NCBI GenBank assembly: GCA_002269645.1
Contig: NIVC01002018.1
Span: 148,229 to 212,228, forward strand
Source: Macrostomum lignano
Lineage: Eukaryota
Reading direction: 5' to 3'
DNA length: 64,000 nt
Shown here: one piece after another, positions 7,181 to 57,619 of the stretch
Layout: each line of letters opens with the position of its first letter
Numbering within the stretch: the first letter of the stretch is position 1
Notes under the pieces: model-generated
Seen by the model: only the letters and a program-made list of their open reading frames with translations
Told to the model about the DNA's origin: nothing
The model's database searches: none
Translations under genes and position numbers: made by a program

Positions 7181-9516
7181 GACTACAATATAATGAGATT
7201 TTGAAAGTTAGACCTCTATTGACTATTTTAGTAATAGTAGGCTGGCCCTAGGCATACTTTTCATTTTATTTAATAAATCTCATTTGCCTAATAAAAAACC
7301 TTACTATAGAAAATAGGTCTAGTATTAGTAATAAAAACCATGCTAGGCGGCTAGGCCGCCTATTGCTACAATTCAAAAGGTTAGGTTAGGTGACCTCATA
7401 GTCACTGACATCGTCATCGACATGACTGACACACCTGATGGTGACAGACATTAAAAAAGAATGCCAGTAAATTCGAATAGGGGCCTAGGCCTACAGTATT
7501 CTACAGTATTCAGGCGATGGTTAAACTTTGAAATGTCCGTCTGCATAACAGCATAACTGTTGGCTGTTGGTCCGCGCTGGAAACCCAAACATTATTATGT
7601 TTATTAGGCTTGCCTTAATGTAGGCCTAGCTAGTGGAAAATTCTAGGACTAAGACTAAGAGCAGTGAGAAAAAAGACGCAATTTTAGTGAAATGTGATTA
7701 TTTCTTTTAAAGAGCACGGCGAATTCGCAAACACATTAAATATTTTACATAATTTAGGACTTGGTCACTGAAGCCAGCTGCACTGCAGCTGAAAGTCCAC
7801 TGTCTGTCTGGCAGTTATGATCTGCTGAAACTTGAAACCGAAAATATTTGCGCTTTAAAATAGAAGCAAAATTTAACAAATGCAGAGTAGGGCGAACTTA
7901 GGATCACGTTGGACAACCAACTTTGTTGTCGTGTAAAAACGATCAGCAAACTTGAAAAGATTAATTTTTCAGTAGACTAAGTTTCCTTTATTTCCTTATT
8001 CGTGAGTATTTCTTTGAAGCTTTGTGTAAATGTGTAGCATAGAACCTTGATACACTTTAATGATATAGCAAAACTTATAACTTTTAAATCCTAAATATAA
8101 TCTAAACAATTTATTTCATGTTTTGCATGGGATAACCGTTCAATAATAAATAAATATTAGCTCAGGACAATTTTTTGGATCTGAAAGGTTATCTCTGGAA
8201 AGTTTTATAGTTTACCAAGACAATGTGACATGTCAATACTTTCTTAATGCTCAACAGGATCATATTTTCAGAATTCAGAATTCTAGGCACTTAAGGTGGA
8301 GAATTTTGTTTCTTTCTTTAATGTTTGCCATTCCTCCAGGCTCTTTACAATACAAGCTAATCTTGGAAATCAATCTTTGCTAAAAACAGCTTTTGAATAC
8401 GCTAATATAAACGTCATGATGAACTCTTACAAAGCGCACTAACTTAACTTTTTAGTTTTCTAAGAAGCCATATCCTGGTAATTCATATCACGTTACACAC
8501 TAATGTTTTGTAGTGTGAAGCGTTAGTCAGAAATTGACATAAGGATATTACTGGATATATCCTATCCTGTATAGACTATTCATCTAAAAGTGTCCTTATG
8601 TGTCCTTGTTTTGTCCAGGCGCAACATTACCGGGCGTAGATATAAGTGTAAATACCAGTTTAAAATCACATAAAAAGAAAGGCTGTTTTTCAACAATATA
8701 ATTGATAAGGCCTATTGGCTATTATTCTATTGTTTTAGTTTATAAGTTGTCTGAGTTGATAATTTAATTTATTGTTCGGTGAAATATATTTAAATTATAT
8801 TTTTGGCGAAGTAGTTAATTTTTTCTAGGCTCTTGATGATCTTGATCTTAACAATAGTTTGATAGGAGCATGCCATTTTATTAGGTTGCAAGATAGTTGC
8901 TTGTGTTGTATATTGTTCGAAATAAATCTGCTTGAAAAGTCGTTTTTTTGTTTCCATAGGTCCCTTTACAAAGAGCCTACTGCATTGTTTAACTGTTTCT
9001 GCTTTATATTACTTCTAGTTCTAGTCATGTTTTCCTTTAAAAGCTTAGCTAAAATAATTTTTCATAGTTTTTCACAGGTATAATATTAGTTATCAATGGG
9101 CTATATATATTATAATGTTTTTTATCACTGCAAAATTAGTTCAATTATACTTTCGTTTGTGGTTAATTCACTTGTTCTATATTTTGTGTTATGTTTTCTA
9201 ACTTTTAATGTTGCCAAATTATTATATCTAGTTGTTGCTAGTTATTTTATTGAAAAACACTGTTTTGTAGTTTATTTATTTTTTATCAATGTACAATTTA
9301 ACAGCTTATTCAATATAAATTCATTTTCCTATTTCAAGAATAGAATAGTTTTAGGTATTTTTAATCCATTGGGTACTGTTCACATGACAACCTAAATTTC
9401 GTAACTCTTGTGAATTCTACCTACTTTTAATTCATTCCAATTTTACTCATAGTAAGAACTGTACTATAAATCTAGCTTTACTCCAATTTTAGGCATCTGT
9501 GCTATATCTACCGCGC

Positions 9517-14775: not shown

Positions 14776-15799
14776 GTCGAAAAAGTCTCAGTTTTAAGTC
14801 CTTGACAGACTGGAGATCAGGAATCAGGAATCCTGTCGTATTCCTGATGGCGTTGGAAAATTTATATTGCATGCAGCATTTTTACTACTTTTACGCTCTT
14901 TACCAGTAGTAAAACCGTAACAGTTAATCAAGGCTCAGAAATATAGCTTCTCTAAATCGATAGATATGTATATTTAATATCACGGTGGATTCAAGTATCA
15001 CCATATTTAAACAATTTTATGGTTTCGCAATATGAGCTAGAGCATGTGATCAATCCATTGATAGATACTCTTGGAAGTATTAAATTGTTTAATAAAATGT
15101 AATTTGTCTTGTACGTCAGGCTAAGATTATTTGTAATTATTATTTTGTTGTAATATTTAATTGTAATTTGCGCTGCGCTTTCGATTCGTCCAAAGTGATT
15201 TCAAATTCGTCAGCGTATGCAACACTACACCTTTTCACGTTCAATTTTGATCAAAGTCCAGTTCTAAAAAAACTAGCGGAAATTCAATTCAGACTGAGGA
15301 TAATTTTGTCTATGGCTAAACCTTACTTCGGTTAGAATGTTTTGAGCTGGGGTTAGACTGGGCCCCAGTCTAAATTGTCTGAATTGAATTTCCGCATTAA
15401 CTGCCCGCTAATTTGAATTAAAGTAAGTTTGACTCCTGCAAGCGGGCTTAAATGTAGTCTATGGCATTAAAAGGCAAGAATAAGTGCCCAGCGGGCACAA
15501 AGGTCATGGTACAATGTACTATTTTAAAGACATTGGATATTGTCATAATTTTTTAGGGCATATGCCTGCATTTTCAGGGCATCAATGTGGCAATTCTTGC
15601 CTCGAATTGTCTATGACATTTTTATTTCAGTAGACGGAACACAAACAAGCAACAGAACAAAACATGCGCATACAATGTGGTTTTAGAAGACAAGTTAGTC
15701 AACAGTTAGTCAGTTGAGTTGCCGTTAATGCGCCAAATTCATCATCAGACATTGGGTTTGCTAGTTGTTCAGGCCTTTAAAATCAAACGTACAATTTCG

Positions 15800-16250
15800 A
15801 AATGTGCCAGAAAAATTGACACTGGTTTAGACAGAATTAGAAGCGATGCAGTCCTGCTCGAATGCAGATCAGACAATTGCTGTAGCATAGTACAGATTGT
15901 CCTTTGTTCTCAGTCTCGATAGAAGAAGCGCAAATAATTAGCCAAAATAGACTTTGGAATTAGTAATAGATCAGTTGACAGCTTGTTATCTTCCAGAAAT
16001 CTCTTAAAAACGGTCTATATTGTCCTCCATCTGCCGAACAGAAGAATCGGGTATACCATCGCGTTCTAGCCCATTTAGGTCTTCAATCACGTCGTCTGGA
16101 ATGTCGAGAATCTCTTCTGATTCGATCTTGTCCGCGAATTCCTTGCTCAATTTCTCCAAATACCGGCTGTTTGACTCCGCTGAAATCCAGGCCAGCTGTT
16201 CGGTCGACATACGAGTACCAAATACAACTTCTCCAGGCAAATATGAATAA
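15800..16250 (-). pseudogene. Degenerate Crypton-like (tyrosine-recombinase core-binding region) remnant
   Basis: Reading across 2-3 frameshifts on the - strand gives IPDSSVRQMEDNIDRFKRFLEDN...ILANYLRFFY.RLRTKDNLYYATA..LICIRAGLHRF, like the region N-terminal to DUF3504 in Crypton/KCTD1/QRICH1-type proteins. Confidence 0.5.
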
Positions 16251-16928: not shown

Positions 16929-17995
16929 ATGGCCGCGTCCAGCTCGTTCTCTCGCTATGACGTTCGAAGCATCATCAAGTTTTCTGTGCTGTCTGGAAAA
17001 TCGACACCAGAGATTCATCAAGAACTCGTGAGAGTCCTAGGAGAAGCTGCACCATCCATTCAAACGGTCAGGAAGTGGGTGCGAGAAATTCAAGAAGGAT
17101 GGGACTGCATGGAGGACAAAGAGCGTTCTGGACGACCAAGGACTGCGACAACGGATTCCAATGCTGATCGCGTGATGGCTTCTGTGAGTGAAGACAACAG
17201 AAGGACATGCAGTGAGCTGGAGGAACTCCTCGGCATTCCCCACAGCACTGTGCACCGCATTCTGACCAAGAATTTAGGCCTACAAAAGCTTTTCGCCAAA
17301 TGGGTGCCACACCTGCTGACTGACGAGCAGATGGAGGAGCGGGTGATGGTGTCCCAGGACTGCCTCCGTCGGGTTCGTCGTGAAGGCGACGGATTTCTCA
17401 GTAGAATAGTGACTGGAGACGAGACGTGGGTCTACGAATGGGACCCAGAGCTGAAGCGGCAGTCAGCGCAGTGGCTTCCGATAGGATCGGCGAGTCCCGA
17501 GAAGGTGCGACGCAAACAAGGCTCATTGAAGGTGATGCACATCATTTTTTTGACATTGACGGGATCATTCTGGACTGGCCTGTGCCTGTGGGTACCAAAG
17601 TGAATGCTGAGTACTATCGATGGGTGCTTCAAGAGAAACTGCGACCAGCGATAAGGAAAAAGAGGCCGGGCCTTCTGGAGAGAGGCGTCATATTCCATCA
17701 CGACAACGCCCCCGTGCATCGGGCCAGACGGGTTGAAGAGCTGCTCGGCTAGTGGAACTGGGAAATTCTCCGCCACCCGCACTACTCGCCTGATTTGGCT
17801 CCGGCAGACTTCTATCTGTTCCCGAAGATGAAAGAGAGCCTTCGTGGCCAGCGTTTCGGATCTGAGGAGCAGGTGAACAACAGCGCTTCATCAGCTCTCC
17901 GACATATGGCGATCGCAGGCTGCAGGCCCGCCTTTGAAGCGTGGGTGCGTCGCTGGGAAAAGTGCGTTGAGCTTGGCGGCCGATTTGTGGAGTGA
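16929..17995 (+). pseudogene. Mariner transposase pseudogene
   Basis: HTH region, WVPHLLT, TGDETW, HDNAP, YSPDLAPADFYLFP; frameshift in a T-run near 17545 and in-frame TAG near 17750. Confidence 0.92.
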
Positions 17996-18797: not shown

Positions 18798-26568
<7,771 letters not shown>

Positions 26569-37700: not shown

Positions 37701-38494
37701 GAGGCCTGCGTTTACCATTGCGACAGCTACGTGAAAGATTTGGCCACTCTGGGCAGGCCCGTTGATCGATGCTTCATCATGGACAATTCGCCAGCCTCCT
37801 ACATGTTCAATGTGGACAATGCGGTACGTGAACACGAGAGAATCCTCGTTGAAGGGATTTGTGTAGATGGGGTTTAGGGGAATCTTGAGTGATTTGCGTT
37901 CGAAAATTCCCGTGATTTGCGTAGGTGGGTGTAGATAAGGGAATCCCAACTGATTTGCGTGAGTGTAGGAAATCCCAAGTGATTTGTTTAGGGGACGTAG
38001 GGGAATCCCAAGTGATTTGTGTAGGTGGGCTGCAGGGGAATCCCAAGTGATTAGTGTAGTGGGGTGTAGGGAATTCCCAAGTGATTTGTGTAGGCTGATT
38101 GAGGAGAATCCCAAGTGATTTGCGTAGGAGTGTAGGGGAATCCCAAGTGATTTGTGTAGGGAGAGTGTACGGGAATCCCAAGTGATTTGTGGTGGTGGGA
38201 TGTAGGGGAATCCCAAGTGATATGTGTAAAGGGGGTGTTTTTTAGGCTAATGCTAAGGGGAACTGCCTTTAATTCCTGTGGTCCTGCGTTCCTCCGCAGA
38301 TCCATGTCAACACCTGGACAGGCGAGCCTGATGACACGGAGCTTCGCGATCTGATTCCGTACTTGGAGCGTCTGGCCAGTTCCGACTCGGTTGCGGAGTT
38401 CTTGCGCAACAATCCTTCGCCAACTGGCGCCCCAGTTTCTATGGCCCAATTTGCTGTTGCCATGCGGATGCATTCTTTTTCGAGTGAATCCTAG
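34726..38494 (+). CDS. CTDSP: CTD small phosphatase-like (FCP/SCP HAD phosphatase), ~369 aa, 5 exons
   Basis: join(34726..34978,36610..36935,37400..37549,37638..37823,38300..38494). [11 protein letters not shown]-terminus, LFCCF, catalytic [58 protein letters not shown]. Confidence 0.93.
37880..38225. repeat. ~30-bp minisatellite (GGGAATCCCAAGTGATTTGTGTAG...) in last CTDSP intron
   Basis: Directly visible. Confidence 0.9.
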
Positions 38495-38559
38495 CTAGTT
38501 ATATTTCCCGGTTGTGACTTCACGTGTCAGCTCATCTCCATGCTGTACAGGGTTTTGGG

Positions 38560-38750
38560 TGTTACAAAAGTACATCAAAATGGTTTGGGGCTCAGCAAAA
38601 GTGCATCAAAATGGTTTGGGGCTCTGCAAAAAGTACAAAGTGGTTGATTCGCAGCTAAAGTACATCAAAAGGGGTTGGGGCTCTGCAAAAAGTACAAAGT
38701 GGTTGATTCGCAGCTAAAGTACATCAAAAGGGTTTGAGGCGCAGCAAAAG
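38560..38750. repeat. Short tandem repeat (~29/58-bp period) downstream of CTDSP
   Basis: Repeated aaagtacatcaaaa..ggtttggggctc / aaagtacaaagtggttgattcgcagct. Confidence 0.8.
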
Positions 38751-39688
38751 TCCATGCAACAAATAATATCTTAGTTCACTTAGAAAAATCTACAACTAAT
38801 AGTTCATCTTTGAATTAACAGTGTTCTGCATCATGAAAGCAAAGTCTATTATCAGTAAGATCATTTCTGTAGAAGAGGAACCAGATTCGAGACCAATATA
38901 AATGCCAAAATATTCACTGCTGCAAATCGCTTTATTAAGTATTTTTTAAGCTTCATACTTCACTTAGTTTTACATTTTTTACTAATTTAGCCAAGTATTT
39001 AAGTTTTTTATATAAATATTCATACTACTGAAGTAGTATGAGTTAGGTTAGTAATAAACTGCTTGAAGGGATTAATCATTATGTTGGCCTTGAGTTATAA
39101 AATTAGCTATCGCGTCTTCCAGATGTATTCCACTTTGCAAACCCTTCATTTCTTCCTTTGTTTTGAAATTGCGGCTCTATTTTTGTGTAAAATATGTTTC
39201 ATAAATATTATATTAACCATATTTGATGTACCCTAGCTTTCTTCTTTATCAATGCTCATTAATAAATTTTGTATTTTCTGGCCTGGATCTTTGCTATTTG
39301 ATAAAGTTTAGACTGAGTTTTAAGTTTGATTGTGTAAATTTTTTGTCAATATATTTAATCTATGTTTTTTGATTGTTTAAGAATTGGAAAAAAAGCAAAA
39401 ATAATTTGTTGTTTGTTAATATCTTCATCATTATTTACATATAAATAACGATAATGTTTAGTGAGACAATCAACAAGGTTCGATTCCCTTGAGCACGTGA
39501 ATTGGCCTGGGATAGAGTACACGCCTGACGTTTAGAAAGCCAGGGCCGCTGTACACTCCCTGTTGTGAACTTTCGCCACGGTGCCGACAACTTGTACAAC
39601 TGTAGTCAGCTGATTTGGGACAAAAAATCTCATAATGTTAGCTTTCGTCTTTTCTTCAGTCAAAGTGCAACAAAAAGCTTCTAAACAA

Positions 39689-41227: not shown

Positions 41228-43264
41228 ATTTTTGGTATGCTTTACCTTTCGCTTTCTATGATGTTAGAGAAAAAAATTATTTTCAAAATTCAGCGATACA
41301 TTTGATGTTTAATATACTAGTGCTAAAATTATTTTTTATAGTTGCCACTTCATTATTACAACTTCATCATGTTATCCTTGCGTAGAAAGCTTAATTGAAC
41401 TGCATTTTGCTTAATAAGAAATTTTTTGCTTTTCTAAAAAGTCACTGCATTCTTTTACTAAACATTGCCTTGTAACTTTCAAGCAACTTATGAAACTTTC
41501 AACTTTGTGAATTTTTGAAACGAAAGGGCTTCTATTTGTTTTGAAATGCATGTTTTGAAGTACAGCTAATACAGCCTAGGGTGTGTGTGTGCGTTTGAGT
41601 TTTTTATACGTTTTCCGAATCGTAATTCTTGTTATTTATTTATAGCTCGAAGCTTAATAGAAAAAATAATTACAGGCTGTGGGGGGGGCAGCGCTGACGG
41701 CAATTCTGCCCAAATTCCACTGACTCCTGACACAGTACGTCAGGAGTCAGCGGACAGTACGCAAATACTGTACGCAGGTAGTTAGTAGTTTATATTGATA
41801 TTATAAACCGATATTAATAGATGCGTACGCTCCGTTAAGCAGTCACCAGACTTCTAGGACTTGGTGATGTCTAATTGTGTAAAATTAAATTTATCGCTAT
41901 TAAAAAGAACATTGTTGAATAAAAAATGCAGTTTGGATAAATTCAATTAAATTACAAAAGAAAAATATTTGGGTCAATTTGACTTTCAGAAATTTTTACT
42001 GACCCTCTTACAGACGTGTTGGCAGCATCCAGAGAATATGGATTACAAAGAAATTTTAATCCGCCTGTTCAATCTTAAAATTGATAAAAATGAGTCCACA
42101 GACAGCATCGAAGAGGTTGGCGGCGAGATGACGGGAGACACCGGATTCCTCAGCTTCAGGCGAAGGCTCAAGATTAAGAAAGGTGATTCGATGAAGCGTG
42201 TTTTTCTTAAATTTAACGATACAAGCCGAACAGATCTCGGTGACCTGAAGCAGCTCAGTGAGGTGGCCAATGCTCGCGAGTGCCTGTTCTACGGCACCTT
42301 CGCACCCTTGCTGGAGCGGACTGCCTCTCAGCTGGGCTTGGGAAGCGTCGGCCTGCCCACCGTCCACCTGGAAATGGTGCTGCCTACAGGAACTCTCATT
42401 GTGATGGAGGATCTCGGCGAGGCTGGCTTCGAGCTGGCTCCAGCCACAATGAACGTTGCTGAAGCTCGCTGCGTGCTGAGCAGTCTGGCTCGAGTCCAGG
42501 CAGCGTTCTTGCTGACGAAAGCTCGACTGGGCAGTCCGGCTTCGGGTCTGTTCGGACCGCAGTCGCCTCTGTCCGACGGTTTCAAATCGACTGATGTTGC
42601 TGGTTTCGACTTTGCCGAAATGCTGCCTGGCTGCTTTGAAGCGTTTGTTCGCGAGTTTCCAAAGTATTTGAAGTGCGAGAAGCGTGTGGCCGCAATTAAT
42701 TCGTACCTTAATGACGACTTTGTTGCTAAAGCTCAGAGGTACTTGAAGACGCGAAGGCGTATTCAGCATGCCAGTGAAGTATGAGACAGACTAGGCCCAT
42801 GGGCTAAGGTCTGCGATGCTTCACGCCTGCCCCTATCTTCAGCAGGTCAAGGCTGGTGGGAGGTCTGCACCCTCTATTTGCCTCTGGCAGCCGCAGACCC
42901 CCCCCCACGCTGTCTCGCAAGTCGACTCAGGGTACTCGTCCCCGCGTGTGTTCAAGGCAGTCCCTAGGGCTGCTGGACAGACTGGGCTCCGGCGCTGGCG
43001 ACCCTATCCAGTGGCTTCGGCCGAATTTGGGTATGCGGGTCTGGCTCGCCAACCTGCAGGCCGTGGTACTGCTCAACGTACTCTCTAATGCCTAAGGTGT
43101 TGACCGTGCCGATGGGCTGGAAGGCCGGGGAGTAGTCCGGTCGCAAGCGGTCCCCCTCCTGGTGTCGGGCCAGCCTTGAGGGTGCTATTGGCCTACTGCC
43201 CGGTCAGGTGGAGCGGCCGGGTGGGTACCGCGCCCCTTTGAGGGTAGCCCACCAACCTTTTATC

Positions 43265-44784
43265 ATGGCCTTCGAGCCGACTATGGATAAACAAGCTATT
43301 TCTAGGGACGGGGACCCTTCTAAACCCCAACCTCAGTCCGAAGGACCGGCCGGCCCTGCTGGCAGATCCCAACCGACTGATTCAACTGTGGCAAAGGAAG
43401 GACCGGCTGGCTCTGCTGGCAGATCCGACCAGAGCTACCAAACTCAAAATACCCTAAGACCTGCCAGCTCCGCTGGTGGATCTAAGGGAACCGCGAGCTC
43501 TGAGCCTAAAGGACCGGCCAAATCTGGCAGATCCGATGAAGCTCAGCGGGCTCGGCTTGAGCGCAAACGCGCTAAACAACGCGCCAAAAGGCAGGCCAAG
43601 AAGGGAGCTGCGGGGGCCAAAGCGGCGGCGTCCACCATGGATGCTGAAGCGACTGGAGTCCCAAGGCAACCAGGCGGGCCGGCCGGTGGAAGCTCCAGTA
43701 GTTCAGCGGCGGCGCTCCCTGGAGCTGCTGCCGCGGCTGCTGAGGCCAAACCACGGCGCAACAAATGGCCACTGCCAACAAGGAGGTTCCTTCGGGAGCT
43801 ACCTTTGCGGCGAAGGCCAAGGCCAAAATCCCGGGAGTGATCATCCAAGGTCGCGACCAGGACTGGACCACTGATCAGCTTCAAAAAGTGTGGAGTGCTG
43901 TTGACTCCTATCTGATTGAGCTGACTGTCGAGGAGGGAATCTCCATCGGCGTTGAGCGGATGGTGCTGCGAAGCACATTCGTTCTTATTGCTCCTAGCAG
44001 CGAGGAGGACGCTCGGCGGCTGCTCCAGCGGCTACCGACGGTCTCCTTGGATGCTGACCTTGGCGGAGCTCTTTTTCTTCGCGAGGGCCAGCGTCCAAAG
44101 ACGATACCCTATGTGGTTTTCGTCCCTGCTAAGAGCACCGCAGCTGGACCAGACGTTATTCGCCGGGTCCTACTGCGTCTGAACCCCGACCTCCCTGCTA
44201 GTGGACTGGTGTATCACCGTAAAGTCCGCAGGGGGGAGACGGGCAACTCAATTGTCCTCGGCCTTTCCAGCACTTGGGCGAGTCGGTACCCTAATGGATC
44301 CTCTTTCCAGCTGGGTGCCCTCAAGCTCAAGTTGCGCCGAGGAAAGTCTGCCAAAGGGAAGGCTACTGCCAACCCCGGCATCTCCGGCAAGAGCGGGGCG
44401 CAGTCTAAGGCCCAAGGAAAGGCGCAAGCCGATCCCAAAGCCAAAGCTGCATCTCGCCCCTCTGCTAGCAGCAGTTCGGCGACCGCGGTAACGGCTCCGG
44501 CCGAGCCCCGGGAACCAAACCTGCCAGTCGGAGAAGGAGTTGAGGACGAGGCCGGGTCTTCGGAATCCGAGCTCTCCTCGGCCACCTTGGTGGGGTCTGA
44601 AGGTAAAGATGCAGGTGAGGAAGCTTCCTCCATCCTGTCATCGGAGCCTGAGGACTCTGCTGGGGGGCCGGTGGGGGTGAGGAGGCCATGGACGTCGACC
44701 AACTCCCATCTCCCAGTCAAGCCCCAGCGGCCTGGGACGAGGACGATCTGTTGTCCAAGTCTCCTTGATGGCCCTGGGCTCTAG
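43265..44784 (+). CDS. LINE ORF1 (nucleic-acid-binding/gag-like), one apparent frameshift near 43780
   Basis: ORFs 43208..43840 and 43765..44784 join if an A-run gains one base; basic low-complexity N-terminus; no clear CCHC knuckle seen. Confidence 0.7.
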
Positions 44785-44807
44785 CCAGATATTGCATTTA
44801 ATACAGT

Positions 44808-47800
44808 ATGACTAAGCTCCACGCTGCCAAAGGAGCGACATTCTGTCTGCAAATAAATTTACAGCATTGCGTATCTGCGTCAGTAAATCTGATGAAGATT
44901 GCTGAGCTGTACAGGCCAGGCCTCATCCTGATCCAGGAACCCTGGATGCGCAACGGTAAGTTGCCCAACATTCCCTCTGGCTACTCTGATTTTTATGTGT
45001 GTGGCCCGGGGAACAGCCGCCCTAGAGCGGCTATCCTCGCTGCTAGCCATCTCCAGGCTTGGCTGAGGACTGATCTCTCTGATGGAGACCTTTGCGTCAT
45101 CCAATCTAATCATTTCTCTCCGCGTACGTGTCTTGTTGCCTCGGTTTATATCCCAGGCGACAGAGACCCTGCTCCCGAGAGTTTACTGCGCCTTGCGCAG
45201 TACTGCGAGTCCCAGAACGCTGAGCTGTGCTTAGGGGGCGACCTCAACGCGCACCACAAGCACTGGGGCAGCAAAGATACCAACACTAGAGGAGAGGAGC
45301 TTCTGGCCCTCATCTCTAACACAAACCTCATGCTCTGCAACCGCGGCAGCACTCCTACCTTTAATAATGGCAGATGGACCGAGGTCCTCGACGCCACACT
45401 CGTTACCCCAAGACTCTTTGACAGAGTCAAGGAGTGGAGAGTCTGGTCTGAGGAGCCCTCCCTGTCTGACCACTGCTTTATCGCCTTTAATATCGCGGAC
45501 ACTAAAACCCAGTCTCCGATCACTTGGAGACGCAATATCCGCAACACTGATTGGGCGGCCTACAAGGCTGCCCTTGATCTGCACCTGCAGGAACTCACGG
45601 ACTTACGTCCGATTGAGACCTGCGAGGATGTGGATCATATGGCTGAGACGCTGACAGGTTGCATTATTGCAGCCTACGAAGCGGCTTGTCCTGCTCGCGC
45701 CTACAGAGGCAAGACCTCGGCGCCGTGGTGGAACCCGGAGCTGGGGAAACTCAGGCGGAAGGCCAAAAGCCTTCATCGCCGTGCCATGAAGACCGGAAAC
45801 CCGGAGGACATGGAGCTTTTCCGGCAAGCCTCCCGCAATTTCAAATCTGAAGTGCGCAAGGCCAAGGAATGTAAGTGGCGCCAATTCTGCAATGAATTGG
45901 ATCAAGACAGACCTACTTCTAGGCTTGTCAAGGCCCTTACAATGGACAAAATGTCCAAATTAGCCATGATAAAAAAGATGATGGCTCTCTTACTAAAGAC
46001 CCTGAAGAAGTGCTTCAGCATATGCTTAGCACATTCTTCCCGAGGGTACCTACTGCTAGACCGGAGCCCAACCATTCGATGGATGGAGCCACCCTAGCGG
46101 CGGGCATTGTCACTGAAGACCTAATCGCTCGTGCGGTCAGAACCTTCAAACCCTTCAAATCTCCTGGACCTGATGGTATCTACCCTGTTCTCCTTCGTGA
46201 AGCAGCCAAGATACCCTCGTTCCTGAGACTCACCCGCAATCTTATGCGGGCCTCTATCCAGCTGGGATACGTTCCCAAAAGCTGGACTGAAGCTCGAGTA
46301 GTCTTTATTCCCAAACCTGGGAAGGGTGACTACCAAAGCGTCAAGGCCTTCCGGCCAATTAGCTTAACATCAGCAATGCTTAAGCTCACTGAGAGGCTTA
46401 TTCTCTGGCGGCTGCTCTCCTGCGAGCTGACAGCGATGCCCCTCAGCAATAATCAGCACGCCTTCCGTACCGGGAGGTCGACTGACAGCGCCCTGCATGC
46501 GATTGTCGAAAAGATTGAACGGGCGGTACTGGGTGACGGTTACGCCCTGGCTCTCTTTCTTGACATTGTTGGCGCCTTCGACAACGTTATCTTTGAAGCG
46601 TTTCAGAGGGCCCTTCAAAATCGCAAAGCTCATGCTACCCTCATACGGTGGATCATGTACATGATCTCCAACCGTACGGTCACTGCCCAACTTCTTGGGC
46701 AAACTGCCTCCACCAGAGTCTGTAAGGGTGGACCCCAAGGCGGAGTCCTCACCCCGACGCTCTGGAACCTGGTCATGGACGCTCTTCTGAGTGACTCCCG
46801 ACCTGACCCCGTCTTCAAAGTCGGGTATGCTGATGACGTCACGGCCATTGTGGCAGGACCGTCTCCCAGCACGCTCAGGGATCTGATGCAGAGCTTTATC
46901 CGCAAAGCAGAATCCTGGGCCAATGACAATGGTTTGGAACTCTCTGAGCCCAAAACCGTTGCCATTATGTTTACCAGCAGACTACGCTGGAACATACGTC
47001 CTCTGCAGCTCTACGGCAGAGATATTGCCTTCGCGCACCAGACCAGATGTCTCGGGGTCACACTTGACCACCGGCTCAACTGGTCCTTCCACGTGAAAGC
47101 AAAAGCTAAGCGTGCCTCAGCCATCCTGGCCCAGCTCCGACGAGCACTTGGCACTTCTTGGGGTCTATCCCCAAAGCGGCTTTGGTGGATCTATACTTCC
47201 GTAGTTAGACCTGCCATTACGTACGCCTCTGTTGTCTGGGTTAGCGCTACCCAGGTCAAAAGCCATGCAGACCTGCTCAACACGATCCAAGGCAGAGCGT
47301 GTAGGCTCATCTGCAACGCCACCAGGTCCACGCCCTTTGCTGGCATGGGGGCCTTTCTTAATCTTCCGCCTCTTGACCTCTTCATCAGGGGTGAGGCGGC
47401 TAGAACGACGCGGCGTCTAATTGATGCCGGCGTCAAATTCATTTACATGAGAGCACCTGCTAAGCGGAACCTTGTCCCGCATAGCGATCTGTGCCTCAAC
47501 TTTCTCAACGAGTGTCAGGCCAATCGCGTCTTCACCGATGGCATTGCCTCAACGCTCAACCTGAGACAGCGCTACTCCGTAGCTATCGACTCGCGCGATA
47601 ACATCAATGACCATTGGAACCCTGGTGAGCTTCATTGCTACACCGACGGTTCTAAGCAGTCAGCCAACACCGGCTTTGGTGTTGGAATCTTTCTGAACGG
47701 GAGGGTCATCGCTACCCACGCTCAATACACTGGGGTCAACTCCAGTGTTTTCCAAAATGAAGTTCTGGCCATCAGCTCCTGCACTGCAGAGCTTCTCGCC

Positions 47801-48547
47801 ACTGGCGTTACTGGTAAGAACATCATTTTCCATTCGGACAGCCAAGCTGCCTTGCACGCCATCAGTGGCTGCAGCACCAACTCTGCTACAGTCCTTGACT
47901 GTATCAAACTCCTCAATGTGTTGGGTTCCGCCAACAAAATTACCCTTAAGTGGGTTCCGGGGCATGTGGGGATCCGAGGAAATGAGTTGGCTGACACCCT
48001 TGCAAAAGTTGGTGCCTCCGGCTCCTCTCTCGGCCCCGAACCTCTTGTCCCGATTCCTGGCTGTGTCATCGACTCGCGCATCAAAGCGTGGATCAGGACT
48101 CAGCACCGCTCGACTTGGGCGAACCGCACGAACTGCAGGCAATCCAGAGGCGCTGTCCCTCAGCCCTCTCACCAGCTCCGGAAGCTCCTCTTGCGCCTCT
48201 CGCGCAGAGACATCCGGGCTGCCACCATGACCCTCTCTGGTCACGGCTGCTTCTCCAGGCACCAGTACCTGCAGGGCAACGCCACCAACGCCACCTGTAG
48301 TTTCTGCAACTCAGGTGACGAAACCGCTGAGCATTTCGTCAGCATCTGTCCCGCCTTCACGCGGGCCAGACTCACTTACCTCGGGCCACACACATCTATT
48401 ACTGAAGCGTGCAAACCCGAAAACTTTAATCAGCTCATGCGCTACCTTCGGGCCACCCGCAGGGCTGAACTCTCCTTTCCAGAGAGCACCATAGCTGCTG
48501 GCGACACTGGGGGACCTCCCTGGGCGGCGCCAACCCTCCGTCCATAG
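44808..48547 (+). CDS. LINE ORF2: APE endonuclease, reverse transcriptase, RNase H, CCHC; one frameshift in an A-run near 45975
   Basis: QINLQH, ILIQEP, GGDLNAHH, SDH; SPGPDG, FRPISL, QHAFR, FLDIVGAFD, PQGGVL, YADD; YTDGS, HSDSQAA, WVPGH, GNELAD; CSFC...HFVSIC. Confidence 0.95.
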
Positions 48548-49419
48548 CGACGCGTCGGCCGTTCAGGGACTAGCGGAATGGGCGCCCGCGCCTTCCCGCT
48601 GTGTCCCCTCCGGGACAGCCCTGCAGCTAAGTCAAGTAAGTCAAGGTACTTGAAGACGAATGTGACAGAGAAGGAGGGGATCGGGGTGACACACTGCGAT
48701 CTTTGGTACAACAACTGCATGCTGAGTAGGGACTCTAGCGGGCATCCGGTGGCGTGTCGCATTATTGACTGGCAAGTTTTCGGCATCGGTTCCCTAGCTC
48801 ACGATTTCGGGCTGCTGTGGCTGTCGAGTATCGATAACTCCATCGTTATTGAGCAGTTTTTTCCATTTGTGAAATATTATTATGACACTATCCGGCGGTT
48901 TTTTGGCGACTCAAATGCTCAAGTCGACGAGTTTCCGGTCTCTCTAGAGCGAATGAAGCAGCTAGCCGTCGCATCGGTGCTGGATGCCATCATCATGACT
49001 GTTGTATCGGTTGAAATTCTGCCTGCGATTGCCAAACCAGACAACTGGCTAGCAAATATGGCTGACTTGATCCAGTGCTTCAAGTTATAATTAGCTGGAT
49101 TTCTTGTCGTAATCGTAACTTTATGAAGTCTTCTGATAGCTGATCTGGTGAAATGAATTAAGAGAAATACTTGATTTATTCTAATTTCTTTTAGATTTTT
49201 AGATGGTATTTTAAACACACTGTGATTCTTGTGTGTATTGTCAGCGTTTTTTCTACTGTTTTAACGACTAGTTAACCAAAATTTACGCCCTTTCATACAT
49301 TTTTCACGGTATGGAACGATGTGCCATGAACAATTTCCCAAGAGTGAATAAACGTGGACTTGTGAGGGTCTTAGTTATAGACTGTGTTTAGTGTTTACTG
49401 TCTATAGGTATAATAAAAG

Positions 49420-50401
49420 TGAAGTAGAACGCTGTTTGCTTCCCGGTTAGGCACTTAAGATTACCTTAAGACTCGAGCCTCTTCAGTGGGAAGTTCTCTC
49501 AACTCTCAGTAGCGTAGGTAGTGCTGCCACCAGTTCCTTCAGGTCTCGGCCTTCGATGAGGTGAGCTTCCCGTCGGAACGAAATAACGAAGTCAACGAAC
49601 TCAGCACCGGGTGCAGATTTGCAGTTCAATTTACAAGGCGTCTCGTCAGCAGCACCTGCCGGGCTTGGTTGGTATGGAGGGCTGAGTTAGCCTCTCGTAG
49701 GTTTGGGCTTTAGTGGGGTCTCAGTCAGACCAGTACAAACGGATTCAGTACGCAAAGGGCACTTAGTTAGACACTGACGCACACGGGATCTTAGTGAATT
49801 CTCCGCAGATAAGAAGCCTCCTTGACGGAAACAAGGGGAGAGGGGTCCTATTTATAGCCGGGAAACACCCACGCACAAGACCTCGTGACTTGTTCTATTT
49901 TTAGAACTGACGTCACTTGAGGTCTCGAGGCAGGGTATCAGTGCGCGCAAGACCTCGTGACTCGTTCTATTTTTAGAACTGACGTCACTTGAGGTCTCCG
50001 GCCAGAGTACACGCGGCTGTGTCTCAGTTGCTATTTTTAGCAACATGAGTCACTCCTCTCCTTAGAGAAGGAAGGGGTACGAAAGCACGTGATTCTCCCG
50101 GTAAACAGGGCCAACGAGTGCAGTAAACATGTTTACTGCACTTAAAGACTCCAAGAACACAAAATCTGTCATGTGACTTGCTCACAAGTCAGAGGAAAAC
50201 GGGACGGGAACGAAACAGACAGCCTACAGCAGAGAAGCTGAGGGCTGAGAACAGAGACGCAGAAGGGCAGAACAGGCCAAGGGCAGCAACAGACGGGCGG
50301 GAAGCTGACCAGCGGCAGACAGCAACCCAGGGCGGGGGCGAGGGCGAAGGAAGCTGCTGACAATAGTGCGACGCCTAACACCAAACTAGCGGATCACTAC
50401 A
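49420..50401 (-). mobile_element. Probable solo LTR (Ty3/Gypsy-like)
   Basis: TG...CA ends (TGAAGT / ACTACA); 4-bp flanking duplication AAAG (49416-19, 50402-05); TATA-like CTATAAATAG on the - strand near 49850; two ~66-bp direct repeats with TGACGTCA at 49880-50000. Confidence 0.6.
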
Positions 50402-51882
50402 AAAGTTTTTTGTGTTTTATTTAATAGTGCATAGTTAGTCTTTTTTTACTTAATAAAATTCTTGGCTCCATTTATTCATTCCATAGCAGTCTGCGAAGGT
50501 GTAACTTTGACAAGGACCTTGACAAGTCCAAAGATCATTTTAATCTATAGACCAAAAAAATTTTACCATCTGGAACTAAAGCTGCGGAATAATGTTGCTG
50601 ATCTAATCGCTTTCTTCAAACTTGTGACGTAACACAGTTACATGTACGTTAGGACACGTGACTTCGTAAATAATTTTTATGATTACAATTTATCGCTCTT
50701 CAATTTGCAATTGTTCCAATCCGCTTTTAATCTTGTAATTGCTACTTTGAAGTACTGATTTACTTTGATTTTGGTTGTCTCTCTTTTTGTAGCATTTTGT
50801 CATGGTCTTAAATGCTTCATTTTTAATATGTTGCATTGCGATATACATGCAATAGGCAGAATTCTATTACTACTGTTATTATTAGTTGGTCGTCCGCATC
50901 GATTTATGTCTTTATTGCGAAATTCGCTCGTAGCTTGTCCGATGTAACGGTAGCCATGCCAAGAAGTGTCCAAGAATCCACTTGCGTCACCACATAGAGT
51001 CGTGACTGGTAAAATAGGAAAGAAATATCTAGACGACACGAACGACGAGAGGTCACGGTAAAAGTCGCCCAAAAATCGTTGGAAATTGAAGCGCTTTGTT
51101 GTCTTCGGCTCTGAAGCTAATCTGAGCAAACGCAAGTGACTCTGGGGCGTTTCTAGAATGTCTCTGGCGCCGTAAAGTCGTACATGTATCTGAGGCGTGC
51201 TATAGAGTCGCTTTAGAATTACTGAGTTGCGCCTTAATTGCATCCGCGTCACTTTATAAATGAATTAGGATCGTTTTTTTTTCGATTAGTACAACTCTTC
51301 AGTCTACTTGAGTTAGTAGATAGTTAAGCACAAGCACAACGACTCTTGGGTGACTTTCTTTCGACTCTTTTACAGTTTTATACAACTCCCGTGATGCGCT
51401 CGTGACTCAAAAGTTACCCAAAAGTCGTTAGTCACTAGTACGGTAACGCTACAATAACGTTTTTAACGGGTTGATATTTTGCCAAATCATGCTCACTAGC
51501 TAGGACTCGCGTTAGAGAAGCTTTGAACGCCCTTTGACGACCGAAACCATAACCTTAGCTATAGGATTTTCGCAGCTCAAGTAAGTTAACTGAGCTTACG
51601 AATTAACTACAGTATACTTTAACTTTGACTGCAGATACATGTGCTTACAGATACGAATAAGTCTTTGCCTGGCTGTTTGCCCTGTGTGGCTCGAATCGAT
51701 ATCAAAGTTTTTCTTATCTCAGACTATATTTGTATTTTTACTTGTGCTTCGAGCGCGGCACAGCCAATCTACTAGCTAGTAACAACGACAAGGGTTCAAA
51801 CTTCGAAGCTTTTCGTTAAAAAAACTAGCTAAAGCAGTGTACACGACAGACCAGAAAACTCTGCAATTCGAGAACTGACAAG

Positions 51883-53016
51883 ATGGACTTCAAACCTATT
51901 TTGCAGCGACTGTTCAACTTGGCACAGAATGAAACAGACAGCAGTATTGAAGAAGTTGGCGAAGAGATGACTGGTGAAACGGGGTTCCTCAGCTTCAGGC
52001 GCAAGCTCAGGATCAAAAAAGAAGACTCAACAATCAACATCTTTCTCAAGTTCAGCGACAACAGCCGGCAGGAGCTCGGAGAGTTGAAAGAATTCAGCGA
52101 TCATTTTTGTCCGAGAGAGTGCCTGTTCTACGGCACCTTCGCACCCTTGCTGGAGCGGACTGCCTCTCAGCTGGGCTTGGGAAGCGTCGGCCTGCCCACC
52201 GTTCACCTGGAAATGGTGCTGCCCACAGGAACTCTCATTGTGATGGAGGATCTCGGCGAGGCTGGCTTCGAGCTGGCTCCAGCCACAATGAACGTCGCTG
52301 AAGCTCGCTGCGTGCTGAGCAGTCTGGCTCGAGTCCAGGCAGCGTTCTGGCTGACGAAAGCTCGACTGGGCAGTCCGGCTTCGGGTCTGTTCGGACCGCA
52401 ATCGCCTTTTAGCGACCCTTTGAAATCCCTTACTGGCACTGCTGTCAACTTTGACGCCTTCCTCGAACAGGGCTTTGAAGAGTTCCGTCACAAGTTTGAC
52501 AATTATCTAAAATGCGAGAAGCGAGCAGCCATTGTCAATGCCTACTTAGAGGATGGATTTCTTGAGAAAACTCGAAAGGTCTTGAAAGTAAATCAGGAGA
52601 AGAGCGAAGTCGTAGGCGTGATTCACTGTGACTTGTGGTACAATAACTGCATGATCAGCAGGGACTCTCGTGGTCAGCCAATTGAGTGTCGTCTCATCGA
52701 CTGGCAGTTCTTCGGCATCGGCTGGCTGACCTATGACCTGGGCCCGCTCTGGATATCCAGCATTGACAATGCCATCGTCACGGAAGAGTTTCTGCCTTGC
52801 GTGGACTTTTATCATCACGCTGTCCAGTCCGCGTACGAGAGCGCGATAGGGGAGAAGTTCCCAGTCTCCCAGGAGCAGATGAGGCAACAGGCTGTGCAGT
52901 CGTTGGTCTACGGCATCGGTTGGGTCATACTGTCTGCGGATACGCTGTGGGCGTTCCAGTCGGTTAGCAACGTGCTTGCCAACATAGCCGACGTGATCGA
53001 ACACTTCAAGCTCTGA
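51883..53016 (+). CDS. EcKL/choline-kinase-like (APH-fold small-molecule kinase) paralogue 2, 377 aa, intronless
   Basis: RECLFY, IVMEDL, Brenner-type IHCDLWYNN, LIDWQ. Confidence 0.88.
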   Translation: MDFKPILQRLFNLAQNETDSSIEEVGEEMTGETGFLSFRRKLRIKKEDSTINIFLKFSDNSRQELGELKEFSDHFCPRECLFYGTFAPLLERTASQLGLGSVGLPTVHLEMVLPTGTLIVMEDLGEAGFELAPATMNVAEARCVLSSLARVQAAFWLTKARLGSPASGLFGPQSPFSDPLKSLTGTAVNFDAFLEQGFEEFRHKFDNYLKCEKRAAIVNAYLEDGFLEKTRKVLKVNQEKSEVVGVIHCDLWYNNCMISRDSRGQPIECRLIDWQFFGIGWLTYDLGPLWISSIDNAIVTEEFLPCVDFYHHAVQSAYESAIGEKFPVSQEQMRQQAVQSLVYGIGWVILSADTLWAFQSVSNVLANIADVIEHFKL

Positions 53017-53611
53017 TGTCTGCGTCATGTTAACCGGCTTCGATAAGTTAAAACTTTATTAAAATCTAAAATTAGATCTTTATTTTCTATGTTAGCTTAA
53101 GTTACAGTTAGAAGTTGTAATTGAATCACAAGCGATTCGAAATGAGCATGCGACAAAGTTTCCTATGACATTTTTCCATACGAGCGTACTTTTGACTAAA
53201 AGAGCGCCAATTTTATTTATTCATTTACGCGTTTTAGGCTATCTATGAATAAAACAAATAAAATAAAAGAAAAAACAAAGCCTCATGTTTTGATTTAATG
53301 AGCTTTTTCCAGTGGTAATTAAAACATTTTCTAAGTTGCTTCCAAATGTTTTATTGATTTTCACGACCAGATAATTTTGATTTTGTCAGTTAAGTTGATC
53401 ATGGCTTTACTTTTTATGGGGCCAGGGGTTGTAGCTTATAGATGGTTAGAGCGTCGTGGGTAGAAGTAAATAACTAGAAGAGACGGGACTATGATATTGC
53501 TCATGTAATTCTATTTTCTAGTTTTTCGTTTCTGCTGCTAAAAGAAGCAATAGGAGCTTCCTGCTCAAGCGCAGAGATGCTGACTAACGACTGAGCACAG
53601 TCGATCGCGAT

Positions 53612-54763
53612 CTACAGACCGAAATGCTCAATCAAATCAGCGACATTGTTGAGTACATTGTCAATCCGACGAAGCACTGGAATCATCTCGGCGAACGTGA
53701 CCAGCCAGGTGATGCCCCAGTTGAGCGACTGGACAGCCTGCTTCCTTATCGTCTCCTTGGAGACCGGGAACTCTTGCTGCAGCCCCGTCTTGTACAGAGA
53801 TCGAATGGTCTCGTCGTACAACTCCACACACGGCAGGTATTGCTCCACGGCGATGGCGTTGTCAATGCTGGATATCCAGAACGGCCCCAGGTCGAAGGTC
53901 AGCCGACCAATTCCGAACACCTGCCAGTCGATCAGGCGGCACTCGACAGGCTGTCCGCTGGCGTCTCTGCTGAGCATGCAGTTGTTGTACCACAGGTCCG
54001 AGTGCGTTATGCCCACTACTTCACGCTCCTCTTGGCCCGACTTGATCACCTGCTGAGCCTTCTTAAGATAGTCCCTATCCAGGTAGCCGTTGATGATGGC
54101 TATTCGCTTGTCGCACGTCATGTACTTTGCGAATTCGCGGCGGAACAACTCGAAACCGGCCGGTAGGAGCTCGTCCATGCTCTTCTTGGTTGCGGACAGG
54201 GCAAAGAAACCGTCGGACAGAGGCGACTGCGGTCCGAACAGACCCGAAGCCGGACTGCCCAGCCGAGCTTTCGTCAGCCAGAACGCCGCCTGAACTCGAG
54301 CCAGACTGCTAAGCACGCAGCGAGCTTCAGCAACGTTCATTGTGGCTGGAGCCAGCTCGAAGCCAGCCTCGCCGAGATCCTCCATCACAATGAGAGTTCC
54401 TGTAGGCAGCACCATCTCCAGGTGGACTGTGGGCAGGCCGATGCTTCCCAAGCCCAGCTGAGAGGCAGTCCGCTCCAGCAAGGGTGCGAAGGTGCCGTAG
54501 AACAAGCACTCTCTCGGACAGAAGCAGTCCATCAATTCCTTCAGCTCGCCCGAGTCCTGTCGGGTTGTGTCGCTGAACTTGAGAAACACATTGATGGTTG
54601 AGTCGCCCTTCTTAACCTTGAGCCGGCGCCGGTAGCTGAGGAACCCAGTTTCTCCCGTCATCTCCTCGCCCGCCGACGCGATGCACCGGTCGGCCTCGTC
54701 CTCAGTCAGGCTGAACAGTCGAGACAAAATCGCCCTAAAGTCCATTTGTCCGTTTGTTTCCAT
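53612..54763 (-). CDS. EcKL/choline-kinase-like paralogue 3, ~383 aa, intronless, convergent with paralogue 2
   Basis: RECLFY, IVMEDL, THSDLWYNN, LIDWQ. Confidence 0.88.
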   Translation of the reverse strand: METNGQMDFRAILSRLFSLTEDEADRCIASAGEEMTGETGFLSYRRRLKVKKGDSTINVFLKFSDTTRQDSGELKELMDCFCPRECLFYGTFAPLLERTASQLGLGSIGLPTVHLEMVLPTGTLIVMEDLGEAGFELAPATMNVAEARCVLSSLARVQAAFWLTKARLGSPASGLFGPQSPLSDGFFALSATKKSMDELLPAGFELFRREFAKYMTCDKRIAIINGYLDRDYLKKAQQVIKSGQEEREVVGITHSDLWYNNCMLSRDASGQPVECRLIDWQVFGIGRLTFDLGPFWISSIDNAIAVEQYLPCVELYDETIRSLYKTGLQQEFPVSKETIRKQAVQSLNWGITWLVTFAEMIPVLRRIDNVLNNVADLIEHFGL

Positions 54764-55889
54764 TTTTTCCTTTCCTTTCACGCAGTTTTATTCACGGTAG
54801 AACTGCCTATATAGACAGCAGGGTTTTGCGAAGTGTTTGTACACTGAGTGTTTTTCTCTCCCAGGGTAGAGCGACCGAGTGCAGAGTTTACCCAGAAACT
54901 GTCTGTCACACCCCAGCTAAAAGTTTGGCCGTCATTTTGATAGCAAAGGGTAGAGAATAAATTGGGGTTGAGCGGCAGGAGAGTACATTCATTATTGAGA
55001 GTGCACTCGGATAAGATCTCTAACCCCCATACCAATGAACTGCGAGCTGCATGTACGAGTAAGATGTTTGTTGTTAAACGAGGGTCCTAGTGGGCTGGCC
55101 AAACCACTGAGAATAGTGGGGTGGGTCCTTAGAGTTTATGTGCTACTAACAGTAGCGCTATATGGACTTTCGTTCAATTCCTACAAAGACGGTCTAGTTT
55201 TTTATAATTTAACCATTATCTATCTCGTACTAGCTATCTCAACTACATTCAGCTATCTCAACTACATTTAGCTCCCTTAGTGGCTCCTCCCTTGAGGTGC
55301 AAATGTACCTCCATGGCCCGCTCCCACCATGACCCTTCCATCGGTTTTCGATTTCGCTATGACCTTCAATCTATTAAAATCTTTATTTCGCAAATTTTTA
55401 GTCAGCCCAAGTACACAGCAGCCTTCAGTCCAGGACTACCAAGTGCTGCTGTGTGGTTAAAAAATTGCGTGAACCGAAAAAGTTAAAAGTGAGTGCATTG
55501 CAACACGAACACTCCAGCCTCTCAGCTACATCAGCTTTAGTGCTGCTGCTATATAGCGTTTTAGTGTTTCGCTTCTTTTCCTCGAAAGAAGGACGAGAAA
55601 ATGTTGAACGAAGCGTTGCACTTCAGGGTTCGTCAGCTGTTGCTGCAATTAAGTTTTTAATATTCGGGGATTTCTCGAGCGTTCGAAACATTTTCCCCGG
55701 AGATGTCCGCAGGGGGAAGTTCGAAATGAATAAGCCGAGGAAAAGTTCAAGTGCTGGGGCAGAGGTCAGTTCTAACGAGGGGAAATGCTCACGACTCGAC
55801 TTTGAATAATCGCGTCCTTATTGTAACAAAATCTGTTCTATTATTTGAGTTTACGAATGTTAAATATTTCTATATTAATTTCCCAAGAT

Positions 55890-56945
55890 TTGCATAGAAT
55901 TCTCTTGATCTGCATAGATTCTCTAGATCTGCAAAGGTTTCTATAGATCTGCATAAAAGTCTCTAGATCTGAATAGATTTCCCTAGATCTGCATGGGTTT
56001 CTATAGATCTGCATAGGTTTCTCTAGATCTGCATAGATTCTCTAGATCTGCGTAGGTTTCTCTAGATCTGCATAGATTCTCTAGATCTGCATAGATTCTC
56101 AAGATCTGCATAGATTCTCTAGATCTGCATAGATTTCTCTAGATCTGCATAGATTCTCTAGATCTGTGTAGGTTTTTCTATGCATAGATTCTCTAGATCT
56201 GTGTAGGTTTCTATGCATAGATTCTCTAGATCTGCATAGATTCTCAAGATCTGCATAGATTTCTCTAGATCTGCATAGATTTCTCTAGATCTGCAAAGGT
56301 TTCTATAGATCTGCAAAGGTTTCTATAGATCTGCATAGAAGTCTCTAGATCTGAATAGATTTCCCTAAATCTGCATGGGTTTCTATAGATCTACATAGGT
56401 TTCTCTAGATCTGCATAGATTTCTCTAGATCTGCATAGATTCTCTAGATCTGTGTAGGTTTCTCTAGATCTGCATAGGTTTCTCTAGATCTGCATAGATT
56501 TCTCTAGATCTGCATAGATTCTCTAGATCTGCATAGATTTCTTTAGATCTGCAAAGGTTTCTATAGATCTGCATAGAAGTCTCTAGATCTGAATAGATTT
56601 CCCTAAATCTGCATGGCTTTCTATAGATCTACATAGGTTTCTCTAGATCTGCATAGATTCTCTAGATCTGCGTAGGTTTCTCTAGATCTGCATAGATTTC
56701 TCTAGATCTGCAAATGTTTCTATAGATCTGCATAGGTTTCTCTAGATCTGCATAGATTTCTCTAGATCTGCAAAGGTTTCTATAGATCTGCATAGGTTTC
56801 TCTAGATCTGCATAGATTTCTCTAGATCTGCAAAGGTTTCTATAGATCTGCATAGAAGTCTCTAGATCTGAATAGATTTCCCTAGATCTGCATAGATTTC
56901 TATAGATCTGCATAGGTTTCTCTAGATCTCCACAGATTTCTAGCT
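55890..56945. repeat. 20/21-bp minisatellite (TCTAGATCTGCATAGATTTC)
   Basis: Directly visible tandem array. Confidence 0.95.
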
Positions 56946-57619
56946 GCATTGATCTGTTATGGATTTCTCAGTCATCGGCTGTCTTGCAGCTAAAACATAT
57001 TCTTATACCAATGGAATCTGTCTAGTGTGTGACATATGGCGTTTTTTATCCCTTAAGTGACTCTAGTCTAGATGTGTATCGAGACTGTGGGGGGTCTGAG
57101 TGATCCCCTAGCCATATAAAACACTCTCCCAAGAAACCGATAAACTGACTGCCATGCAATGAGATAAAAAGCTCTCTGACTGCACTGAGCTGCCAGCGAA
57201 CTGGCAACGGACCATGGCGATACACGCGGATTTCCACACTTTACACAGCAACTTAAAGACAAGGAGTTGCCCTGCTGCGATGCAATATATAGCCCATGGT
57301 TTACACGCCGGCTCTGCGGCTGCGGACTGAGGCTGAAGACAGAACGGCCAACCGCTTTATGATGGAGAAAGTGCTGGAAGCTGCCCACTCCCCCCCCCAA
57401 GTTTCTGGCCCGTGTAGCCGACCGAAAATCAATTGAGGCCGGGATCGATTTAATGCGGGGCGACGAGGCGCGGGACGGATAGGGGAGACCGCGGCTGCTG
57501 CTGGCGAGGGCTGGGAGAACCCGGCCAGAATCCATAATTTCAATCACTGGGCTCTGTTTTTGCTGCGACGCTCAGGCCTTTTAAAGTGGCATTTTTAGCG
57601 CTTTGAACCTGCGATCGGC

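Follow-up and report, generated by a model that had tools for sequence, protein, structure and literature searches.

Interlocus gene conversion is well described in tandem gene families, among them the human HBG1/HBG2 gamma-globins, RHD/RHCE, the OPN1LW/OPN1MW opsins and CYP21A2/CYP21A1P, and the theory of escape from conversion has reportedly been treated by Walsh in 1987 and by Teshima and Innan in 2004. In the class I/II genes of the major histocompatibility complex (MHC) and in KIR-type families, homogenised segments flank divergent segments that are maintained by selection. The system considered here lies in a window of 64,000 nt from the flatworm Macrostomum lignano (the whole stretch of DNA that was analysed, on contig NIVC01002018.1 of assembly GCA_002269645.1, Mlig_3_7). 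Between 42 and 55 kb the window carries three single-exon EcKL / CHK kinase-like genes, named A, C and D, of which A is split by a long interspersed nuclear element (LINE). They belong to a lineage-specific tandem EcKL array in which one segment of ~291 nt has very probably been kept near-identical by recurrent short-tract interlocus gene conversion.

The array resembles the globin, RH, opsin and CYP21 families in its sharp tract, in the collapsed synonymous divergence inside the tract and in the old, divergent flanks. It also shares with them the conflict between tract and flank trees, polymorphisms common to different paralogues, and conversion of direct as well as inverted copies. What sets it apart is that one tract, with identical edges, is common to four paralogue types, and that the array exists as three homeologous copies in a neopolyploid. 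The mosaic of homogenised and persistently divergent segments recalls the MHC and KIR-type families, but here there is no evidence of selection maintaining the divergence, the ratio of nonsynonymous to synonymous divergence (dN/dS) being low and members of the array decaying. A limited literature search found no flatworm or EcKL example of gene conversion; the one paper that mentions both EcKL and gene conversion is apparently an unrelated Drosophila population-genomics study.

The EcKL family includes the Bombyx ecdysteroid 22-kinase, and Drosophila EcKL genes have been proposed to encode enzymes of detoxification by phosphorylation (PMC10859841, PMC9387500). A literature search for EcKL genes in Platyhelminthes returned unrelated papers only. 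The M. lignano genes are like the insect EcKL / CHK kinase-like genes in their Pfam match, the residues K56 and E79, the HxDxxxxN and DxQ motifs, the tandem arrangement and the predicted fold. They differ in forming a flatworm-specific clade and in having the histidine of the usual 'LAxFHA' motif replaced (LARVQAAF).

The shared core and its divergent flanks

The core occupies positions 42278-42568 on the plus strand in gene A (nt 241-531 of the coding sequence, CDS), 52117-52407 on the plus strand in gene C (CDS nt 235-525, residues E79-P175) and 54221-54511 on the minus strand in gene D. Within its 291 nt, A and C differ at 5 sites, A and D at 9 and C and D at 12, whereas the flanks of the window copies differ at 27-47% of sites. 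Genes C and D run towards each other and end tail to tail, at 53016 (C) and 53612 (D). The original prediction had described a near-identical block of ~290 nt in three kinases, synonymous sites included, with divergent flanks and with the second and third copies inverted relative to each other, and each of these observations holds. In 60-nt windows of the A/C/D codon alignment, identity is 92-100% in the core (CDS nt 241 to ~530) and 38-87% elsewhere, and it drops abruptly at both core ends. Past the core, identity of A, B and D continues to 42583 in A, and that of D with A continues to 54206. In a maximal-segment permutation test, none of 10,000 shuffles reaches the observed value for any of the three pairs (243-269, against a shuffle maximum of 59-75). 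The segments abutting the two core edges are the most divergent in the gene, with 36-67% nucleotide identity. The GC content is 60-64% in the core and 47-56% in the remainder of each gene, an excess compatible with GC-biased conversion.

Two more copies of the array, L001 (NIVC01001655.1) and L002 (NIVC01000860.1), were found via contigs encoding related proteins; the window is also labelled L003. L001 and L002 each have four EcKL genes, arranged A-B-C with D last and inverted, and a comparison of the three loci indicates that this was the ancestral array and that gene B has been deleted in the window. A NIF phosphatase gene is called upstream of the array in L002 and on the window contig. Outside the core, genes of the same type differ by 0-3% across arrays. 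M. lignano is a neopolyploid with three subgenomes (S, L1 and L2) that have a single-nucleotide polymorphism divergence of 1.9-2.4% (PMC10733133), and the three array copies fit three homeologous subgenomes.

The comparison set therefore comprises 11 EcKL genes, namely A, C and D of the window (W_) and A to D of both L001 (L1_) and L002 (L2_). Between gene types, the mean proportion of differing synonymous sites (pS) is 0.085 in the core and 0.62-0.80, which is saturated, in five flank segments. The paralogues are thus old, since their flanks are saturated at synonymous sites, and synonymous divergence along the genes is non-uniform, collapsing only in the core among the segments compared. In the core, genes of the same type from different loci have a pS of 0.075, roughly equal to that between types. 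Separate neighbour-joining trees give the same picture: each type forms its own clade in 100% of bootstraps for the N-terminal flank, the middle segment and the C-terminal flanks outside a second tract (see below), and in 0-3% of bootstraps in the core.

Variation within the core is reticulate. It consists of 25 variable sites in 291 nt, with 41 site pairs showing all four gametes and a Hudson-Kaplan minimum number of recombination events (Rm) of 6. The variants 439T and 519T are confined to L1_B and L1_C, and 408T/410A are found in L1_A, L1_B and L2_B. The core of L2_D is without the five D-specific variants that mark W_D and L1_D, and is closest to that of W_C. Genes of the same type from different subgenomes differ at 2.5% of core sites vs 1.4% of flank sites (odds ratio 1.84, Fisher p = 1.2e-4, from pairs that are non-independent). 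A core that diverges faster than its flanks between same-type genes is what the import of paralogous variants predicts, and constraint at the nucleotide level predicts the opposite. Recurrent interlocus gene conversion that continued after the subgenomes separated is well supported by these comparisons. The earlier suggestion of ongoing segmental conversion is likewise borne out, because synonymous divergence is non-uniform, core and flank trees are incongruent, core variants are reticulate and some events are specific to one array.

A second tract joins genes B and C. In the window it is located in gene C at 52691-52914 on the plus strand (CDS nt 809-1032), where its partner B is deleted. Over these ~220 nt, B and C are 95-100% identical, compared with ~47-80% in the flanking sequence, and the tract in the window gene C matches gene B of the homeologous loci at 96.8-97.3% identity. 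Types A and D are recovered in 100% of tract bootstraps, B in 53% and C in 56%, whereas a merged B+C group is found in 100%. L2_B and L2_C share an extra codon, which sits in a run of G, and a GAGCAG variant is present in L2_C and both B copies where W_C and L1_C have CAACAG. The sharing between L2_B and L2_C points to a probable exchange after the subgenome split. Since the second tract is inside the C-lobe, conversion is not restricted to a constant module.

The core tract thus behaves as a common pool of sequence for all 11 genes of the three homeologous arrays, and conversion acts on direct and inverted copies alike. Exchanges went on after the three subgenomes parted (~2% divergence), and a second, independent tract of ~220 nt joins B and C. 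Heteroduplex formation may be blocked from extending into the divergent flanks, and the tract edges may be common to all copies because both adjoin the most divergent parts of the gene. Identity would then sustain further conversion within the tract while divergence blocks it outside, possibly reinforced by purifying selection on the core protein and by selection against converting the neighbouring segments. The sharp edges fit a passive heteroduplex barrier and selection on the neighbouring segments alike.

Protein fold and alternative explanations

Gene C, gene D and the LINE-less gene A score 97.0, 95.5 and 92.7 bits, respectively, against the Pfam EcKL profile (PF02958; cut-off 22), which places all three in the family. 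HCDLWYNN or HSDLWYNN, and IDWQ, are found in A, C and D, corresponding to the HxDxxxxN (Brenner) and DxQ motifs. In an alignment with distant EcKLs, H248, N255, D273 and Q275 do not vary, nor do the beta3 lysine K56 and the alpha-C glutamate E79, the latter being the first codon of the core, and D250 is replaced by E in a single B-type sequence. An AlphaFold2 model of gene C, built from a 17-sequence alignment, has a predicted local distance difference test score (pLDDT) of 84.5 and a predicted template-modelling score (pTM) of 0.88, and shows the bilobal fold of choline kinase and APH enzymes; a model from a 5-sequence alignment, with pLDDT 46, was not used. The best Foldseek matches in the PDB are choline kinase alpha, PsiK, Rv3168, N-acetylhexosamine kinase and APH enzymes, with probability 1.00 and a template-modelling score of ~0.5, and a PDB search by sequence gave nothing significant. 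Searching 5.8 billion proteins through a word index yielded nothing beyond the M. lignano proteins of the cluster itself. In an exhaustive search of cluster representatives, the nearest relative besides the UniProt entry A0A1I8GQF0 (P0005, see below) is a further M. lignano paralogue (31% identity), and crustacean EcKLs come next (~25%).

In this fold the core (E79-P175) contains the second half of alpha-C, beta4, beta5, the hinge (MEDL), the 'LARVQAAF' helix and the start of a low-confidence loop. The glycine-rich loop (GEEMTGETGF), K56, the catalytic loop H248-N255 and D273-W-Q275 are all outside it; these motifs are conserved in the protein and saturated at synonymous sites. The original prediction saw the core as a constant hinge/ATP module combined with diversifying substrate-binding parts. 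The hinge is indeed in the core, but it is not 'the ATP module', because the ATP-binding and catalytic motifs lie elsewhere.

Selection could still have produced such a design, with the alpha-C/hinge/alpha-E module kept uniform and diversifying selection on the adjoining segments setting its limits in an array of xenobiotic kinases. In its favour, all four gene types have the same sharp tract edges, and divergence in the gene is highest right beside the core, with a proportion of differing nonsynonymous sites (pN) of 0.35 in the middle segment. That segment is a loop plus helical insert in the AlphaFold2 model and would, as in enzymes of the choline-kinase/APH type, line the substrate pocket. 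The neutral homology-barrier model, however, predicts the same sharp edges. The placement of the ATP-binding and catalytic motifs and the second tract within the C-lobe do not suit a constant module, and with flank dN/dS at or below 0.27 and dS saturated, there is no signal of positive selection at this resolution and no coarse sign of positive diversification. Members of the array are also being lost: A carries the LINE and B is deleted in the window, L1_B contains a stop codon and the frame of L2_D is shifted. The adaptive design is therefore unlikely, and the proposal of a constant module with diversifying partners is not upheld. In such a design the core might double as a recombination handle by which N- and C-terminal halves are exchanged; among the 11 genes there is no recent shuffling of this kind, and the flank types always match. 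A role in detoxification or ecdysteroid metabolism, as implied by the earlier description of a detoxification-kinase array, would be an extrapolation from insect EcKLs, a function not established outside arthropods, and one of the three window copies is broken by the LINE.

A few past replacements might suffice in place of continuing conversion, if all paralogues had their core replaced shortly before the subgenome split and the cores have evolved independently since. The between-type core divergence (~3.1%) is of the same order as the subgenome divergence, and some variants still go with gene type: 473T, for instance, is found in every A copy, and W_D and L1_D keep the D-specific set. The confinement of the cross-type variants 439T/519T to one array (L1_B and L1_C), the loss of the D-specific set from L2_D, the tract-2 variants shared by L2_B and L2_C and the elevated same-type core divergence are contrary to independent evolution since the split, and this explanation is quite improbable.

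The assembly itself could have made divergent cores look alike. Mlig_3_7 was assembled with Canu from PacBio reads and polished by Pilon with Bowtie2-mapped Illumina reads and STAR-mapped RNA-seq reads (PMC5730564), and short reads wholly inside the ~290-nt block are ambiguous among up to 11 copies. The block, however, is present in long-read contigs with type-specific flanks, and the 11 genes on three contigs retain copy-specific minor variants. Majority-rule polishing would lower the same-type core divergence, not raise it. Since short reads cannot cross-map at 55-70% identity, polishing could only smooth a block that was already similar, and there is very little chance that the near-identity is an artefact. 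Least probable, and already largely refuted, is an embedded element (a structured RNA, a small-RNA target or an antisense gene) that conserves the core at the nucleotide level: the identity does include synonymous sites and long antisense open reading frames (ORFs) do cross the core, but the core variants are reticulate, not type-specific, and the core diverges faster than the flanks between same-type genes of different subgenomes. A structured RNA in the core was rejected (RNA fold z-score -0.52, and no Rfam match in the core), as was antisense coding, because 17 of the 25 variable sites fall on the third position of sense codons, the pattern that a sense-coding sequence should show. An Rfam E-value scan of 41.5-55.5 kb gave one sub-threshold chance match, inside the LINE.

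Several points weigh against recurrent conversion as the explanation, or against its details. All sequences come from one assembly of one species, and the comparison is within-genome only, the nearest database relative being just 31% identical. Individual core variants may be mis-assigned between copies because Pilon used multi-mapping reads, and 36% of that assembly by length is reported to be chimeric between subgenomes (PMC10733133), so that the label 'locus-specific' is not fully secure. The same-type pairs in the Fisher test are non-independent, and the extra codon of L2_B and L2_C is in a G run prone to slippage and sequencing error. The non-reciprocity that distinguishes conversion from double crossover is beyond what sequence alone can show.

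Decay of the array and neighbouring features

Gene A is divided into a 5' part at 42038-42751 on the plus strand (codons 1-238, through the first copy of a target-site duplication; found as an ORF and by tblastn) and a 3' part at 48644-49090 on the plus strand, which encodes the C-lobe with HCDLWYNN and IDWQ and ends in the stop codon. Between them, after codon 238, lies a LINE of 5,892 nt, a non-long-terminal-repeat retrotransposon at 42752-48643 on the plus strand, identified by Pfam domains and its junctions. It contains ORF1 (~43765-44784), an apurinic/apyrimidinic (AP) endonuclease ORF (44808-46097; PF14529/PF03372) and an ORF with reverse transcriptase and RNase H (46010-48547; PF00078, PF00075), so that the expected domains occur in order. 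It is flanked by a 15-bp target-site duplication, AGGTACTTGAAGACG, an exact repeat present only at 42737 and 48644 (the copies are 42737-42751 and 48644-48658, plus strand). Its 3' tail is AAGTCAAGTAAGTCA, not poly(A). The second ORF is interrupted, since the endonuclease and reverse transcriptase are in different frames that overlap at 46010-46097; the shift is apparently in an A-rich stretch of this overlap, and a long-read indel error is possible. The LINE is absent from the homeologous loci L001 and L002, and there is no second copy in the window.

Excision of the LINE and one copy of the duplication restores an intact frame of 381 codons ending at 49090, and the resulting protein (42038-42751 joined to 48659-49090) is identical to GenBank BOX15_Mlig009006g2 (P0004). 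The duplication begins AG|GT, and for this reason removal of GT(42739)...AG(48645) as an intron restores the gene A frame exactly. The BOX15_Mlig009006g2 gene spans 7,056 nt and encodes the LINE-less protein, so the model must skip the LINE as an intron. Either RNA-seq reads of the intact homeologues were aligned as spliced over the insertion, or splicing does remove the LINE, which would then be a nascent intron.

Gene C is intact, with 377 codons at 51883-53016 on the plus strand (ORF, tblastn, Pfam), and is 98% identical to BOX15_Mlig009006g1 (P0001). Gene D is inverted and convergent with C, at 53612-54781 on the minus strand (ORF, tblastn, Pfam). Its ORF starts with GTG at 54781, the database protein P0003 (383 aa) starts with the methionine at 54763, and the methionine that aligns with those of A, B and C is at 54745. 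The UniProt entry A0A1I8GQF0 (window ~52027-54520) is a mis-modelled fusion of a D-type kinase fragment with an antisense translation of gene C, where the antisense frame stays open because the core is GC-rich.

Comparison with L001 shows that the last ~12 codons of gene B (NVADLIAFFKL), with a 1-nt indel, remain in the window at ~50591-50629 on the plus strand. About 1.77 kb of L001 (5404-7176) is missing, and the junction, near 50590, has an AAT microhomology. Loss of B by unequal crossover within the cores was rejected, since one breakpoint falls within the spacer between A and B and the other at the 3' end of B; it is also contradicted by the purely C-type N-terminal flank of gene C. Nearby, ~1 kb of the window (49421-50401) is without a counterpart in L001 and holds a 72-nt tandem duplication (49872-50009).

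The array in the window is decaying, with a recent LINE in A and B deleted. The count of three kinases is correct for the window, but the first copy is split, its C-lobe being displaced to 48644-49090, and the array had four members ancestrally. In L001, gene B (6079-7212) has a premature stop at codon 252, and in L002, gene D (14832-15966) has a 1-nt insertion that causes a frameshift at about CDS nt 200. At least one member is broken in every array, a different one in each, as if redundant copies had decayed reciprocally after polyploidisation, unless long-read indel errors are responsible.

Other features of the window are repeats and isolated domains. A satellite of ~1.1 kb with 19-20-nt units (TTCTCTAGATCTGCATAGA) is located just downstream of gene D at 55840-57000, and shorter tandem repeats with 34-nt and 59-nt units are found at 38001-38234 and 38547-38754. 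An ORF at 16929-17603 has Mos1/mariner-type helix-turn-helix domains (PF17906, PF13565), so that it looks like what is left of a mariner-like transposon. A von Willebrand factor A domain (PF00092) is encoded in a minus-strand ORF or exon at 22277-23215.

Implications for the array and its annotation

The array is a clean but ordinary case of bounded interlocus conversion, a textbook phenomenon that involves no new mechanism. Because it is replicated in three subgenomes, conversion events can be dated relative to polyploidisation. Gene models of the array need care, since one takes the LINE for an intron and a UniProt entry merges sense with antisense translation, and gene trees built from the whole CDS are misleading. 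Short reads, quantitative polymerase chain reaction amplicons, RNA interference triggers and guide RNAs that target the core will address all paralogues and homeologues at once.

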